DNA of 64,000 nucleotides from Lepidodermella squamata (GCA_047495785.1 JBLDXI010000007.1:682001-746000); one strand, 5' to 3'. Positions 30,998 through 38,807 are shown, counted from the stretch's first letter. The notes: generated by a model from the letters alone, not told the origin. Numbers and translations: made by a program.

Positions 30998-32569
30998 CGC
31001 AAAGATGAACATAACGTCACTTACTCGTTGTGAAACGTCACTTAAATTGTGGGTTGTGTTGGTATTATTGCTTTAATTGCCTTAATTAAATTCAATGGAA
31101 TCACAAAGCGAAGAAAATGAAATGTTGGAGGATGGTCTTCTCATAGAGATTGGCGGTTTTGGCTCTGACGACGGCGACGAAGACGATCACGAAGATGCCG
31201 ACGAAGAAACTGAAAATCAACCAGTTAACGTGAAGAAAAAGCGGACCCATAAGAAATGGGTCTTCGTCGGGACGTTCGAAAACCACGAGTTGGCGCGCGA
31301 TCACGCCTTGGCGATGGCGGCTGAACATGGTTTCAAAGATTGGGCCTATCAGCGGATGACGTATCACAAAGACGGCTCGACGAAGGAGTACTACTACTGT
31401 CCCGTTGGCGGCCGGGGTGGTGGTCGTGCTGGTCGGACGTGTCAAAAGGAAATCCTTTATCATTTTCACGGGGATTCTTTGGACGTGACACTCTACACTA
31501 CTGATTGCGATCACACTGGTCACGCTGATTATGGTCGAGGTTTGCCGGAAAAAGTTGTTCTTTTAATCAAAAAAGTAAATTTGAAAATTTGAAAAAATTT
31601 ATAAAAATTTATAAAAATTTAATTGTTAAAATTTAGGGCTTTGAAAAGTCGAACATTCACAAGCCGGCTGCCATGGAAGACTTCTTGCGAGGCGAGGATG
31701 TTGACTCGATTCCAACAGACAATATCGCCTATGAGCTGAGAAAATTACGAAATGATGGCCAGGCTCGACCGGAGCCATTCACTCTAGGCGATTTCGAGGC
31801 ATTTTCCGCGACGCGGCGGGTAATTCCTGAAGACCCCGATCAGGCCTATGTTCTTCATCTGGACGTTAAACCGAAGACAACCAAAGACAGTAAACAGGAA
31901 TTTCGTATCATTTTGTCGACGCCTCGACTGCTTAAAATGCACGTCTTCAACGGCCCCTTTCACCCCGATGCCACTTACAAGTTGACCTGGATGGGTTTTC
32001 CTGTCTTAGTTGTAGGAACGAGCGATAAAGACAATCATTTTCACCCCACCGCCATGGCCGAGTGCAGCGGCGAAACACACGTCGACTTTCAGCACGTGTT
32101 TGAAGCGGTGAAGAACTCTTATCGCGATGATACAGGTAATTGAGTGATTACGAGTGGTTTATCCGGTGCTTAATCGCTTAATCTCTCTTTCTAGGCGCAC
32201 CAATGGGACAGCCGGCACTCGGTGTGCGCCAAGACCAAGGCCTTTCTGACCTACTTTAAAGCCGAGTGGCTGGACTACGCCCGCCGAGCTTGCTGGTGGG
32301 AGGGCAATGCGCCGGGTTTGCCGTCGACCAATAACGGCATCGAATCTTATATCGACGTTATAAAACGAATGCATACGTTGCGCGAGCGACTTGCCCTGCG
32401 TGAACTGCTGCAGATGATTGCAGAAGAAAGTTTACCTCGCTTTTCTCGCGACCGAAACGAAACTAATGTGAATTGTAAGAAGTTTTCACGAAGCCAACGA
32501 TTACAGTTGAGCATTGGGCGCATTGGGCGCTTAAGTTTGAGGAGTTCTGTGAACCGGCGACGGTCAACA

Positions 32570-35500
32570 AGCGGAATTCTTCGGCCGCGAATTTAAAAAC
32601 CGCGAAAATTAGTCCGCGTGAAAAATTATCCAAGCGAAAATTAAGGCGCGTGAAAAAATGTTTCCGCCAAAATTAGGGCGCGCAATAATTATTTTGTCAA
32701 ATTTGACCCACAAGTGAAAAACCGCGAAACTTGTGTGTTTATTAGGAAATCGCTTCGCTATTATATAGACATTCGTCGGTTAAGTATACAAAAATTTGAT
32801 CAGGTAACGAACGTCGTTTAACAGTAGCTCGCAGATTATTTTACACGAGTCGGTGACAATTCGAAAGCAGTATGAGAGAAAGATTTAGAAGATCGATTTT
32901 TGATTCAATTTTTGATTAATTTAAAAATATAAGGCGATGATTTTGTAGCGCAAGGTTCACTCGGGAACAGGTTGAGCCGGCGTTCGATGATGCATTTCTG
33001 CGCGAAAGTGCGAATTTCGGCACCGTTGAATTTAACGTGACTGGGCGACCGGTTGTTGGCGATTTCAGCCAGATGTGCCATCGCGAAGAGGCCGCAATCG
33101 TTAGAATTGGACTGCTGCGAACACGGCATAAATTGCACCTCGAGTGTGTTGCGAACGATGTTATTGGCGTAGCGGTCTAGTAGCTGGCGTTTCGCATCTT
33201 GGGACGGCTTTGAGAATGGCCCAAAAAGCGAGTCGTACACTTCGACCTGGCCGCTGACGTTGCTGGAAAGAAACCAGTGTTGCCTGTCGGCGTCATGATG
33301 GACTTGAACACCTTGAAAAAAGCGCAAATTTTTAAATCGAGTTAGAGGTTCGAGGTAACAATAACTAACCTCCGGGTGCAGGCATTTCGCTAAATTTAAA
33401 CTTTCGGTTGCTAATCAAAGTGGAGTCGCAACCCGCGAGTTCCGGTCTTTGATCGCGGAAAAGCGATTGCGCCGCGTCGACGATTCGGTCTTTCACCCAC
33501 GCGCCTTCGGTAATGAAAATCGCGCGTTCGCGCTGCCTGAGAATCAGCTGGCCAATTTGAAGCCAATCTCGCTCCAGATAAGCGAGAAAAGCCGCTTTCA
33601 AGGCAGCAGCTTCGATCAGCGGAAGTTCAGACGATTCAGCGAGAACATTAGCTTCGATTGCTGGGATGAGCTGTTCGTCGCTCGCATCCCGTTGAGATGA
33701 AACGGCCGTCTCGAAGCAAAGCGATGATGGTGCTGTTTCTGCCACAGGAACCGGCGTTGAAGGAAGTGGAGTCGAGGAAGGCGGAGCAGGCGTTGAAGTG
33801 ATCGACCGCCAAAGTGGTGTTGACGTTACAGGTGTAGAATTCGACGGCGTCGGCGAATCGCGAATAACGGCGCGCTTTTTGAAGCAAGCGATCGGTTTTT
33901 CATACTCCTCGTCGTCGCTGTCGGTGAATTCGTTTTTTACCTCGCTGCACTCGCCGATCAAATCGAACGGGACTTCGTTGAACAAAATTCCCGGTCGCTT
34001 CCAGGCAGAAAACACCAAGTCGGGTCGCTTAGCCAGGTCAGCGTACGCGCCACCCAGCCATTCAGCATGAAGAGGCTTGATGATACTGGCCCGCGTGTCA
34101 ACTGGTTTCGCATTAGCTCCATCCGCCTTAAAACTTTCGAAAAATTGATCAGTGTGCCATGCGTCGTACCTGTCGCGGACTCGATTCTTCACGAATTGAT
34201 TGAGGAGGAAATCCGCCGGTTGTAGCTCACTTGTCAGGTTGGGAGGAACATAGATCGGTATCATTCGATGCTCGCGTAAGCAGTCCTTGAATTCCGGCTG
34301 CAGGTGACAAGCGTAATGATCGAGGATGATGATTGCCGGCTGCTCTGGAGGGAGGTCGAGCGACTCGCGAGTTTTGACGCAATATGGATCCAAAATTTCT
34401 ACGACGTAGCGTTTCATCGTATGCTCGACTGACCAGTGAGATGGCGACTCGGTGACATCGAAACCTTCGGGGAAAACCAGTCCACGGTGGCAACGCTCGG
34501 TCTTTCCCGCGTAAATGACCTGCAGGCAAAACCGCGTAATTAGGTTGATGAAAATAAAAAATTTATTAATTAAAAATAGCGCATGTGCAGCGCTCAACTC
34601 CGCGCTCTTACACGCACACACAAGCGCGCGCACAAACAAAATTATGATTTAATTCCCCCTATTTCATCGCTAATTTTTATCATAAGCACGCGCTGTCTAG
34701 CTGTCAAATTTGTTTCTTGAACTTCCTCACCGTCGAAAACTTGATTTTTCATACAATTTTCACCGTTTAAAAAGTTTAAAAAGTAAAAAAAATGCTGTGG
34801 ATATTCTAGATTCTATGGTAAATCATTCAAAATTTTGCGCGCGAGCAGTATGGTCACTTCAGCAAAAATACGAGAGAATAAAAAATTAAAAAATAGTTAA
34901 CCTGAAACGGCAGAATGCTGCCAGCCATAGTTGAGCCGAGAACGACGGTGACCTCGCGCTTGTCATCGACGCCATGAATTTTGACCTGCTTCGAGTTTCG
35001 CCGCTCCATCGTCCAGTTGCCAACCGGAGCTAGTTTAGACGGAAACTGATCAAAGTTAACTATCAGCTCAGGCGGAACGGCGCACTCAAGGGCAGTACGT
35101 CGAACAAGAAGGCACCAGTCCGCCTTGATCTCGTCCTTGTTCGCCACATCCGACTTCGCGCTTTTGGTACCCTTGCGCTTTACGTAGCCCATGCGGCGAA
35201 AAAGGCTCTGCGTCCACGTTTTCGTCAGCCTGATGCGGGTACCACCTTTGCCCATGAGTAGCGTTGGGCACTCGGCGCGAACGATTGCCTCGGCGATTGA
35301 GAGAACGACCAAAGTGTTGACAACCGCACCTTTCTCGCGCAATTTCTCGATGACCTAAGAGAAAAGAAAGCAAAATTATTGCTCATTTGCATCAATTTCA
35401 CGGTCAAATTTGAAAATTTATTCAAACGAAAAAGGGGAAAAGCAACAAAAATAGTTACTTACAATTTGGATATTTTTATCGGTGTCGTCAGGAATCATAA

Positions 35501-36402
35501 GAGATGCGCCGGATTCCTTGGGCAGCGGATCGATCTGACTCAAGTCGTAGCCGAGGGTTGCACGTTTTTTGTCTAATTGCTGCTTGATGCCGCGACAGGT
35601 CGACTCGTTGAGCGGCTTACCGAGCTCTTGACCAAACTTGCGTGCTGCTTCAGCTGCGCTTCCGTTAATTTGAAACTTGGCGATTTTAAGCCGATATTCG
35701 TCAGAGATTTTCAGGTAAGACGAGGGGCGTTTCCGGCTGCCGGTCGGCGTTGACGCTGGATTACCATTGTAGAGCGCGGAGATAGCGTCGTTGACCGCGT
35801 TCAATGAAGTGATCGGCACCGAGGGCGCGTCGTCACGAGTGATCTTGATTACGCCCTTTGGACTAGGGACACTTGCGAAGTAGGCGTTGAGTGTTTTCAT
35901 TTGCGATTAGAGCGTATTAGAGCGAGAACTGTACGTTTGACGTTTTCGACAAATTCGGCATGCGCCGTAGCCACCCTGCGCGCCGCTTCCTATTGGACAT
36001 CGGGTGGACCAATAAAATTCAAACGGCGTGCTCTCGATTGACAAGGTGTCTATCAAAGATCGCGATCAGACAAGACGGCGCCCTCAAACACCGCGATAAA
36101 GACAACCGCCGCCCTGGACGCGCGTTCGCCGCGCGAGCAAATGTGCGTAATAGGCTTTGTTGTTTGGTCCATGAGCGCACCTGTTCATTTGCGTGCGCTA
36201 TGGCTCTGCGAATCACTGATGCGGCACTTGCGCGAATTCATATCACCGCGAAAATTACACGCGCGCGAAAAATTCGCTCACGCGAAAATGGTACTTTTTC
36301 GGAAATTGCCTCCGCGAATTCAAGAATCCGCGAAAATGAAAAATGACCGAAAATGGGCCGTCCGCGAATTCAAAAATACCGCGAAAATTAATACGTTTAC
36401 AG
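32570..36402 (-). mobile_element. pogo-family DNA transposon nested in the MULE transposase gene
   Basis: Terminus ...CCGCGAAAATTAATACGTTTACAG|TA at 36402. CCGCGAAAA subterminal arrays at 32585-32730 and 36230-36390. The left terminus is not recognisable. Confidence 0.8.
32905..35900 (-). CDS. pogo-type DD35D transposase fused to a Ulp1/C48-like cysteine protease (815 aa predicted); exons 35463-35900, 34902-35354, 33370-34519, 32905-33311
   Basis: All three introns are GT-AG and phase-consistent (2448 nt total). Brinker-like HTH (AAEAARKF), CENP-B-like HTH (LTKTWTQSLFRR), NFDQ, ILDHYACH-35aa-QPAD. Last exon has HW, YDSL and QQSNSNDCGLFA. Confidence 0.88.
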
Positions 36403-38807
36403 TACTGGTAAATACTGAATTTTTAAAATTTCAAAATTTCCGAATTTAAATTAAATTAAATTATTTTTTTTTTATTTTTTTTTATTTAGCTACGTCACTC
36501 GCAAGGGGAAGGAGTACGACTGCACGTGTGCCGCGTTCTTGAAAGAACACATCTGCAAGCACACCCTCGCCATGGCCTACCGCAATAATGATGTGAAGCC
36601 AGAAGCGGATGACAACATGTTTCAGAAGGTCGAGAGGAAGGGTCGCAGGGGTAAACCGAAAGCTACCTATTCGGCCTTGGAACGTACAGAACGCCGAGGC
36701 TCAGAACGATTTTGCAACTGACACTGCCGAGCCTGTCGAATTCGACATGCTACCTGAACCGGCAGCTAAGCGTAGCCATGGAACAGTTGGCGAAGCTGTT
36801 CAACCAATTGTGCGAGGACGTGGCCGAGGTCGAGGCCGTGGAGCAGTTAGAAGCAGTTCCGAAGACGTACCTACCCGGCCGACTCGTGGTCGAGGCCGCG
36901 GAGCAGTTCAGGAAGCTTCTGAAGACCTCGAGCCTACCCGGCCGGCACGTGGTCGTGGTCCCGGTCGCCCGCCGAAAAATTCAAGAAAATAATTTTCGAG
37001 ATTTTGTTGCAATTTTGATTAATAAAATACGGTGTGGCATTTTTACTTGATAGAGGGCGAATCCACTCATTTAGTACACGCTTTACGTTTTAAGTGGCAT
37101 ATCCACGCTCAAAAAGGATACACTTTAAAGGGCGTCCGCCAGATAAACGGCCGCGAGGATCTGGAAACTGCGGGCGAAAATCAGTGGTCTTATTAACTTG
37201 CCTTTGCCCCTCGCAAATTTCCAGACTTAAACGGTAAATTTTATTCACATCATCCTGGATCCCTTGCATGATAACTCGCAAAGTCGAAAAAAGCCAGAAA
37301 TTTTGTAAATAAATTATACCAATTTTCCTGGTTGGGCTGATTCAATGGACCATTTTGTCAAAAGAGTGAAGCATTTTTTGGTTAAATTTTTCTCCGCATT
37401 GAAATGCTCTTGACTTTCAACAATAAACTTTTTTTCGGCTATCCCGAATGTTTGGATATTGCTGAGTCAGTTTATACCAGAATGGTAGAATAAGGTTTCG
37501 AAATAACAGTTTGCTAATTAAAAGTTATGCATGATGATTTCGTACGAGAGCCATGTGACGCAACACATGCTGTCTTGTGTCTTAAAAAAATAAGCGAAAC
37601 ACAGCACAGTCGCATTTTTTCTGCCATGAAGTCAACAGCTATCAAGGGCTCAGGCTTTCGACTCTGCGAATGCCGCGCGGCACGGCGCGCGTTCATTTAG
37701 TCAGGTACGAATTTTGCCTTAATTTTCGTCATTATTAGCCAAGGCAGGTGACACAATTATGCATATTATTTAGATTTTTACGAAATTTATCTACAGCAGT
37801 AAAATGGCTTGTTTGAATCGCGTGTTTCCTACCCGCGAAAATCGGATGACGGACAATCTTCACTGAGTACGCTAATTCTCTTTTTTAAAACGCGCCGAAA
37901 ATAAGTAAAAATGTTCCCTTTCAGATACCACTCAAGAGCACCTGTACAGCCGCCCTTAAATCGCGCCCGCGAAAATAAAAAACGCACTTGACCACACTAT
38001 TTCAGGCAGCCTTCAATGGCCGGCGTGCTACTAAGACCCACTCTACCGAGGCGGAACTGCTGGGTGTGGCTGGTTCCGGGTCAACGGCCGTTCAACATCT
38101 TCGGCCTTCGGCGCAACCTGCTCTCGATGGACCCATGCCGCCTGTTTTTCTCGAAATCCGCCGCGACAAGGCTGGCAATTAGAAAATTTGCCGGCGATAT
38201 CGGTAGCCGTTTAACGCCCTTTCAGCGAAATTAACTGTCATCTTTTTTCTTGCTATCGCAATTAGCTATTACTACTAAACATGCCATTTTGTCTTCTTCA
38301 AAAAATTGTAAAATGCGAGTCAGTTTGAATAGTCATAAATAAAAACACGTTTGGTAAAAATTGTCATTTTTGGGGTCAAAAATGAGCAGCGCAGTGGTAT
38401 TATGCATAAAAGCGATTATTAAGCAAAATCTGGAAAAATCAGTATTAATCAGATAAGCATACTCCAGTGTTTTCATTCAAAACGTTTTTAGTGCAACACC
38501 AGAGTTTTTGGATTAAACAGATACCGAATTTACCCTTTAATGCGGGTTGGAAAAAAGCGTATCTGGCTAACGCTCGGATGCGCATCCGCTCTTGACTCGG
38601 AATCGGTATCCTTTTTGAGCGTGATTGCGTGTTAAAGTGGCGTTTTAAGGATTAAGTGACGATTTCACTTTATGTGACAGTTTCCAGATTTAAGTGACGC
38701 AATCAATTATGGCGGTATTAAAACACCGTGTGATTAAAACACAGCGAATTGAGATTGATTTATGTTTTTTTGGCACACTACAAAAACGGTACAGTATTTC
38801 GATTGGC

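Follow-up and report, generated by a model that had tools for sequence, protein, structure and literature searches.

A locus in the genome of Lepidodermella squamata raises the question of whether a transposase of the pogo type can carry a Ulp1-like protease as part of the same protein and, if so, what the protease would do for the transposon. The window, meaning the whole stretch of 64,000 nucleotides (nt) that was analyzed (GCA_047495785.1 JBLDXI010000007.1:682001-746000), was compared with the genome as a whole, which comprises 121 Mb in 151 contigs. On the minus strand of this window, a pogo-type DDE transposase and a Ulp1/C48-type protease are predicted to form one spliced reading frame. 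The interpretation favored here is that the locus is a low-copy pogo transposon whose 815-amino acid (aa), four-exon transposase includes a complete Ulp1/SENP-type protease, and that this protease is active and aids the element. This interpretation is considered probable, although it is some distance from assured.

The predicted gene begins with an ATG in exon 1 (35463..35900), which encodes 146 aa including a first putative helix-turn-helix (HTH) domain at residues ~67-116. Intron 1 (35355..35462; 108 nt, phase 0) is followed by exon 2 (34902..35354; 151 aa), which carries a second putative HTH domain of the Tc5/CENP-B type together with the first catalytic Asp. Intron 2 (34520..34901; 382 nt, phase 0) interrupts the protein at PFQ/VIY and leads into exon 3 (33370..34519). 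Pfam, translation, and alignment place within the 383 aa and one additional nucleotide of this exon the rest of the DDE_1 domain, a linker rich in Pro, Ser, and Thr, and the first, N-terminal half of C48 (..GAWVKDRIVDAAQ..). Intron 3 (33312..33369; 58 nt, phase 1) splits the C48 domain inside a Gly codon (g/gt), with a predicted junction of ..APGG/VQVHH.., and exon 4 (32905..33311) supplies two nucleotides, 134 aa, and a TGA stop codon. Exon 4 corresponds to the catalytic half of the Ulp1/C48 domain, as judged from Pfam and an AlphaFold model. All of these features lie on the minus strand, where the introns were read directly as GT..AG intervals. The exons sum to the predicted protein of 815 aa (146+151+383+1+134), in agreement with the four in-frame exons and the PGG/VQVHH junction over a 58-nt intron that had been proposed in an earlier, sequence-only reading of the window.

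Each of the unspliced reading frames runs into a stop within a few codons, such that the open reading frames (ORFs) end at 35418, 34854, and 33365, and therefore the long frame exists only after splicing. If intron 3 were retained, the predicted protein would end one codon past ..PGG. The frame of exon 4 opens with TTG and can be entered in frame solely through intron 3. Strong comparative evidence for the predicted fusion comes from two relatives described below, a paralogue on contig 17 of the same genome and a metagenome scaffold, both of which place a phase-1 intron 3 in the same codon.

The transposase core is assigned mainly from exon 3, which matches the Pfam family DDE_1 (PF03184) with an E value of 6.4e-7 and 29.6 bits against a cut-off of 22; DDE_1 scores in relatives reach E 2e-20. 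The D..D35D signature noted earlier can be located codon by codon. The first catalytic Asp lies in an NFDQ motif of exon 2 (codon 35051-35049), and the second and third lie in the IILDH (34321-34319) and LQPAD (34213-34211) motifs of exon 3, with 35 residues between them, which is within the range of pogo elements. In an alignment of 12 relatives, N100 and D102 of exon 2 are invariant, and D67 and D103 of exon 3, which form the D35D pair, are invariant in the three lineages represented by the window, contig 17, and the metagenome scaffold (L017). A word-index protein search with exon 3 yielded a single relative, P0001, whose match covers the DDE part only. A sequence search of the PDB with exon 3 gave low-complexity matches to the linker only, and a profile of the transposase family matched no solved structure in the PDB. 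Judged by its DDE_1 domain, D35D spacing, and TA-flanked inverted repeats, the predicted transposase appears to belong to the pogo superfamily of the IS630-Tc1-mariner group. These are the characters it has in common with pogo, Tigger, Passer, and Fot elements and with the domesticated proteins CENP-B, POGK, and POGZ.

Members of this superfamily also have a bipartite N-terminal HTH region, and such a region may be present in the predicted protein, yet it goes unrecognized by Pfam HTH models. A domain profile check upheld the earlier assignments of DDE_1 and Peptidase_C48, which both score above their cut-offs, whereas exons 1 and 2 gave no Pfam HTH match even at E 10. Some indications of the two HTH domains were nevertheless obtained. 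In P0001, the closest of the fuller-length relatives, the stretch homologous to exon 2 matches HTH_Tnp_Tc5 just below threshold (E 2e-4, 21.7 bits versus a cut-off of 22.2). The AlphaFold model of exon 1 contains a three-helix unit at residues 67-116 with a predicted local distance difference test score (pLDDT) of ~95, and it is matched only weakly (E 0.3-3) by known structures, among them DNA-binding domains from SETMAR, Tc3, Mos1, and the N-terminus of CENP-B. These results weakly suggest two putative N-terminal HTH domains.

The protease assignment begins with exon 4, which matches Peptidase_C48 with E 5.2e-7 and 30.2 bits (cut-off 20.7) over profile positions 94-201 of 217. The catalytic order expected of a C48 protease, which had been recognized in the sequence-only reading, is found within this exon as His H11 in QHWF (codon 33279-33277), Asp D26 in VYDSL (33234-33232), and Gln Q66 (33114-33112) and Cys C72 (33096-33094) in QQSNSNDCG. 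The spacing of these four residues is 15/40/6, and the corresponding spacing in yeast Ulp1 is 17/43/6. An alignment of 16 paralogues shows no variation at Q66, N68, D71, C72, or G73. The preceding half of the domain, encoded in exon 3, includes a putative counterpart of the WLND-type motif, whose Trp clamps the Gly-Gly tail of the modifier in this protease family; the window copy has AWVKD at this place, and the contig 17 paralogue has AWLND.

Fold evidence was gathered for exon 4 alone, which is the catalytic half of a domain whose complete form straddles intron 3. The AlphaFold model, built from the alignment of 16 paralogues, has a pLDDT of 93.8 and a predicted template-modeling score (pTM) of 0.87. 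The top 14 Foldseek matches include Ulp1, SENP1, XopD, NopD, and a de-SUMOylating protease of the Ulp2 type, with Ulp1 and SENP1 at a probability of 1.00. When the best 50 chains were re-aligned with VIA-align (Z 5.4-7.9, 95-110 residues aligned), all 50 proved to be clan CE (Ulp1-type) cysteine proteases or deubiquitinases, and the model maps onto Ulp1 residues 505-616, the stretch that bears the triad, with Z 7.4-7.9. Exon 4 is thereby modeled as the catalytic half of a C48 protease with the clan CE alpha/beta fold, an outcome on which the earlier proposal had been staked beforehand. Sequence searches returned less. The best PDB match to exon 4 was a weak one to Ulp2 (E 0.31), and a word-index protein search with this exon, whose length limits leave out full-length kin, found nothing.

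Cellular Ulp1/SENP proteases and NEDP1/DEN1 thus resemble exon 4 in the fold of the catalytic half, in the His-Asp-Gln-Cys order, and in similar spacing. However, the window domain is just 14-22% identical to them and is without their N-terminal targeting region. Unlike cellular Ulp1/SENP, it also has a C-terminal motif, MR..x..C....L..FPS, that is common to the aligned C48 paralogues of this genome. From its retained catalytic residues, the protease would be expected to be catalytically active.

A sister element on contig 17 provides an informative comparison. This paralogue is a complete element of 3,994 base pairs (bp) plus the flanking TA (L016:2017-6014; contig 17, 3830017-3834014), with the same 13-nt TA-flanked terminal sequence inverted at both ends and 86% matching over the terminal 44 nt. 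It has the same four exons as the window copy, all open, with identities to the window of 47% for exon 1, 66% for exon 2, 41% for exon 3, and 52% for exon 4. Its second intron falls at the same PFQ/VIY junction, and its last intron, of 54 nt, falls in the same Gly codon and the same phase (1) as intron 3 of the window. At least eight nonautonomous derivatives of this subfamily, each ~1.27 kb long, retain both ends (83-96% identical) and part of the 5' region. Derivatives of this size occur on contigs 17, 73, 15, 32, 20, 19, and 11 (for example, C17:543675-544952 and C73:279555-280845). The existence of deletion derivatives that keep both ends indicates past mobilization of the contig 17 subfamily.

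The third lineage, which represents another organism, was reached through P0002, which is the best match to exon 3 among 1.84 billion protein representatives and is encoded on an ENA metagenome scaffold (L017). On this scaffold, P0002 is followed by a C48 exon, with the same exon order and the same positions for introns 2 and 3, and the DDE part is 46% identical to that of the window. Across the window, contig 17, and L017, the DDE and C48 parts are conserved, whereas the linker rich in Pro, Ser, and Thr differs in both sequence and length. Exon 4 is 37-52% identical among the three, with the catalytic His, Asp, Gln, and Cys all kept. The conservation of C48 with all four protease residues beside a drifting linker argues that both enzymes are under selection, and the protease appears to have been kept by selection for the benefit of the element.

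Comparison of copies also defines what remains of the element in the window. The window copy is a pogo-type element of 3,828 bp on the minus strand (32577..36404), with an intact 5' end and a 3' end that is ~55 bp short. Homology with the copies on contigs 28, 13, and 17 begins exactly at 36404, and five copies whose flanks are unrelated share this starting base, TA/CTGTAAACG... The 5' terminal inverted repeat (36359..36404) accordingly reads TA/CTGTAAACGTATTAATTTTCGCGG... and is accompanied by subterminal repeats of the TTCGCG type. The TA flank is best understood as a target duplication rather than as part of the repeat. The contig 28 copy is 99% identical to the window copy from 36404 down to 33620, at which point homology stops. 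Contig 13 holds two internally deleted copies that have kept both ends. They reveal the true 3' terminus, ..AATACGTTTACAG/TA, which repeats the 5' end in inverted orientation; as flanked termini, these copies finish in ...CGTTTACAG/TA. The TA-flanked inverted repeats and short deletion derivatives identify the element, on comparative grounds, as a low-copy transposon and not a host gene.

Homology between the window copy and the contig 13 derivatives breaks off at 32577, ~55 bp before the true terminus, and the 3' untranslated and subterminal region of the window copy (32577..32904), with repeats of the CCGCGAAAATTA type, ends at this truncation point. The word "intact" that had been applied to the locus therefore holds for the reading frame but not for the element, which is cut at 32577 and is without its 3' terminal inverted repeat. 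Loss of this repeat looks like a simple truncation beside a MULE-type fragment. Two ORFs on the plus strand (31673-32596) represent a fragment of a MULE-like transposase (weak Pfam MULE match, E 0.004) and reach the truncation point. The window copy probably cannot be excised or move itself; it could, however, supply enzyme in trans, for example to the contig 13 derivatives.

An inverted-repeat scan around the gene that found no terminal repeats had suggested a nonmobile gene, and this was set aside in view of the other copies, which show the 3' end that is missing here. Look-alikes of CCGCGAAAATTA at both ends of the window copy are in direct orientation and are subterminal repeats rather than the terminal repeat. 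Short repeats of the CCGCGAAAATTA/TTCGCG type at 32590-32700 and 36360-36400 of the window might serve as transposase binding sites. Older fragments of the protease end of the family, 72-90% identical, are present at C28:761086-761592, C3:694806-695011, and C24:3659501-3659775. Just outside the 5' end of the element, an ORF on the plus strand (36609-36992) encodes RGRGRGRG and TRPxRGRG repeats and has no Pfam match, and an Rfam scan of the whole window gave no match.

That Ulp1 is not a standard feature of pogo elements, as had been stated at the outset, agrees with the comparisons made. In a search of 1.84 billion proteins, the alignments of the best 150 relatives of exon 3 are confined to the DDE part, and 10 long relatives scanned with Pfam showed no C48 domain. 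Three relatives were found in JGI metagenomes, again through the DDE part, and neither of the two with enough downstream sequence has a protease ORF. Neither of two systematic surveys of pogo elements refers to a protease, Ulp1, or OTU domain (PMC7386202, PMC7325037). The extra domains that they do describe, namely KRAB, zinc fingers, and a dimerization domain, belong to host genes and not to mobile elements (PMC7386202, PMC7325037). A full-text literature search found no report of pogo, mariner, or DDE_1 fused to Ulp1/C48. Overall, the capture of Ulp1 by transposons is already known, and no reported pogo carrier was found.

The known carriers fall in other transposase groups, several of which the sequence-only reading had named. 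For about two decades, Ulp1 or OTU domains have been recognized in MULE, Ginger, Crypton, Zisupton, and Helitron elements. To our knowledge, no function has been shown for any of these transposon-borne domains. The closest parallel is Ginger1, whose transposases in Hydra and other animals carry a C-terminal Ulp1 or OTU domain (PMC2836005). Like the window element, Ginger1 is a cut-and-paste transposon with introns and with Ulp1/C48 at the C-terminus of its transposase, and Ulp1 and OTU appear to be interchangeable within the group. Its enzyme, however, is a DDE protein resembling Gypsy integrase (rve) and makes 4-bp target duplications, whereas the window element is of the DDE_1 pogo type and is flanked by TA. 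The MULEs that carry Ulp1, which include plant Kaonashi/KI-MULEs and VANDAL KIU genes as well as MULEs of hydra and lancelet, likewise hold a transposon-borne C48 domain that has long been kept. These elements belong to another transposase superfamily, and in plants the Ulp1 domain is a separate gene, off the transposase.

Other C48 exons in the L. squamata genome are 33-42% identical to exon 4 and have the C-terminal motif in common. On contig 59 (L031, 250500-254500), weak matches to Integrase_H2C2 and rve mark an ORF that is followed by a 539-aa Peptidase_C48 ORF, an arrangement that looks like a Ginger1-like element with this protease module. Loci on contigs 42 (L032) and 24 (L035) have FAR1/SWIM and MULE/ZSWIM-RNaseH-like ORFs adjoining C48 exons. 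Three paralogues (L018, L021, and L024, on contigs 42, 9, and 11) read MNSL where others have YDSL, with Asn in place of the catalytic Asp that the pogo copies retain; the one of these loci that was scanned, L018, adjoins ORFs of the FAR1/SWIM type (L032). On contig 54 (L033, 2615500-2620000), a more canonical pogo-like ORF with NIDETG and a weak DDE_1 match is found upstream of a C48 exon sharing 41% identity with exon 4. It was not counted as a third pogo-C48 lineage because the two parts could not be linked into one gene. The occurrence of related C48 exons beside integrase-, MULE-, and DDE_1-type ORFs indicates a module shared among transposon superfamilies. The broader proposal, that a protease for ubiquitin-like modifiers was gained more than once by the pogo transposases of this animal (Ulp1, in at least two lineages), as Ginger1 did likewise in Hydra, is tentative and rated as less likely than not.

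If the favored interpretation is correct, the N-terminal modules would bind the ends of the element, and the flexible linker would tether the protease there. Because it would be tethered to a protein that binds these ends, the protease would remove its modifier near the transposon, most likely by stripping proteins at the site of SUMO or of some other ubiquitin-like modifier. Candidate targets would be host factors for silencing or repair, or else the transposase, and removal of the modifier might raise the chance of expression or transposition.

Several observations weigh against this interpretation. All three introns are known from sequence alone. The exon 3 half of the C48 domain, when searched by itself in Pfam, gave no match, and the L017 relative (2200-2440) is without ~7 residues that include the Trp of AW(V/L)xD, although it keeps the His, Asp, Gln, and Cys. 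Among the structural matches to exon 4, less than one Z unit separates SENP5, Ulp1, XopD, and NEDP1, and the SENPs are hardly ahead of bacterial CE deubiquitinases; with such ties, specificity for SUMO, NEDD8, or ubiquitin cannot be told from the fold. Protease activity and substrate are both entirely inferred. Furthermore, the window copy is without its 3' repeat; the missing terminal piece, which would be expected elsewhere in the window had another element inserted, was searched for there and is absent. The contig 28 copy is without the protease part, and in the contig 17 copy 12 residues (FIPPNLTSECQPAD) are duplicated in tandem across the third catalytic Asp. It is therefore unproven that any copy is active today.

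Some alternative explanations concern what the locus is. An error in the gene model, with exon 4 being a separate gene or never joined to the others, would be encouraged by the manner in which splicing was recognized, which was by reading the strand, and by the early end that retention of intron 3 would impose after ..PGG. Yet the C48 domain begins in exon 3 and has its catalytic half in exon 4, the two frames meet only through intron 3, and two diverged relatives have the same phase-1 intron in the same Gly codon, all of which makes such an error barely credible. It is very unlikely that the locus is a domesticated, transposase-derived host gene that is no longer mobile. A single full-length open copy of the subfamily, immobile through the loss of a terminal repeat and with its frame intact, is what such a gene might look like, but a 99% identical second copy on another contig, the sharp TA-flanked terminus, and internally deleted derivatives with both repeats are not. 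The sister subfamily has both a complete element and at least eight short derivatives, and the repeat loss can be read as a simple truncation where the copy abuts a MULE-type fragment. More deserving of attention, and still improbable, is the idea that C48 is a passenger, a captured fragment of host or transposon origin that is without a role or decaying. Capture of gene fragments is common among transposons, the contig 28 copy does without the protease, and most relatives of the transposase are without C48. Against this stand the catalytic residues and motifs kept at 37-52% identity in three lineages, the open frames, the conserved intron, and a linker left free to diverge.

Other alternatives accept the protease and differ as to its task. 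It might act in cis by freeing or demodifying the transposase, in the manner of viral clan CE proteases that process polyproteins. The structural matches do include adenovirus protease, African swine fever virus pS273R, and poxvirus I7L, and a long flexible linker separates the two enzymes. This linker, however, has no conserved cleavage motif of the Gly-Gly type and varies in sequence and length in the three lineages, and a cut-and-paste element has no polyprotein in need of maturation; a role in cis is rated as unlikely, somewhat ahead of the passenger. The sequence-only reading had put forward a specific anti-silencing device, in which the tethered protease counters SUMO-dependent heterochromatin silencing guided by small RNAs at the element. 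A Ulp1/SENP-like domain on a DNA-binding transposase would act locally, and SUMO ligase activity is needed for silencing guided by Piwi-interacting RNA (piRNA) in Drosophila. According to a review, some anti-silencing VANC genes of Arabidopsis VANDAL elements have captured a Ulp1 domain, to which no function is assigned (PMC13317346). Nonetheless, the window sequence is silent on both substrate and pathway, the link between piRNA and SUMO is knowledge from Drosophila, and NEDP1, XopD, and bacterial CE deubiquitinases fit the exon 4 model about as well as SENPs do. The apparent exchange of Ulp1 and OTU within Ginger1 favors general deconjugation of ubiquitin-like modifiers near the transpososome over a strictly SUMO/piRNA story. 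The specific device is thus doubtful, although it carries more weight than the other alternatives, and the preferred interpretation continues to be an active protease that aids a low-copy pogo transposon in this more general way.

Taken alone, the finding extends an already known habit of transposons only incrementally, and the anti-silencing mechanism is a guess. A carrier of the pogo/Tc1-mariner type nevertheless widens the known pattern of transposon-borne Ulp1. Moreover, a conserved module that is also found beside MULE- and integrase-type genes strengthens the case that it is of use to DNA transposons generally. The pogo and Tc1/mariner transposases are the easiest eukaryotic transposases to assay, and the contig 17 element with its nonautonomous partners makes the question approachable. 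If pogo elements here have indeed gained such proteases repeatedly, stripping SUMO or ubiquitin from the surroundings of the transposon would be a general, convergently acquired countermeasure of DNA transposons against host control.

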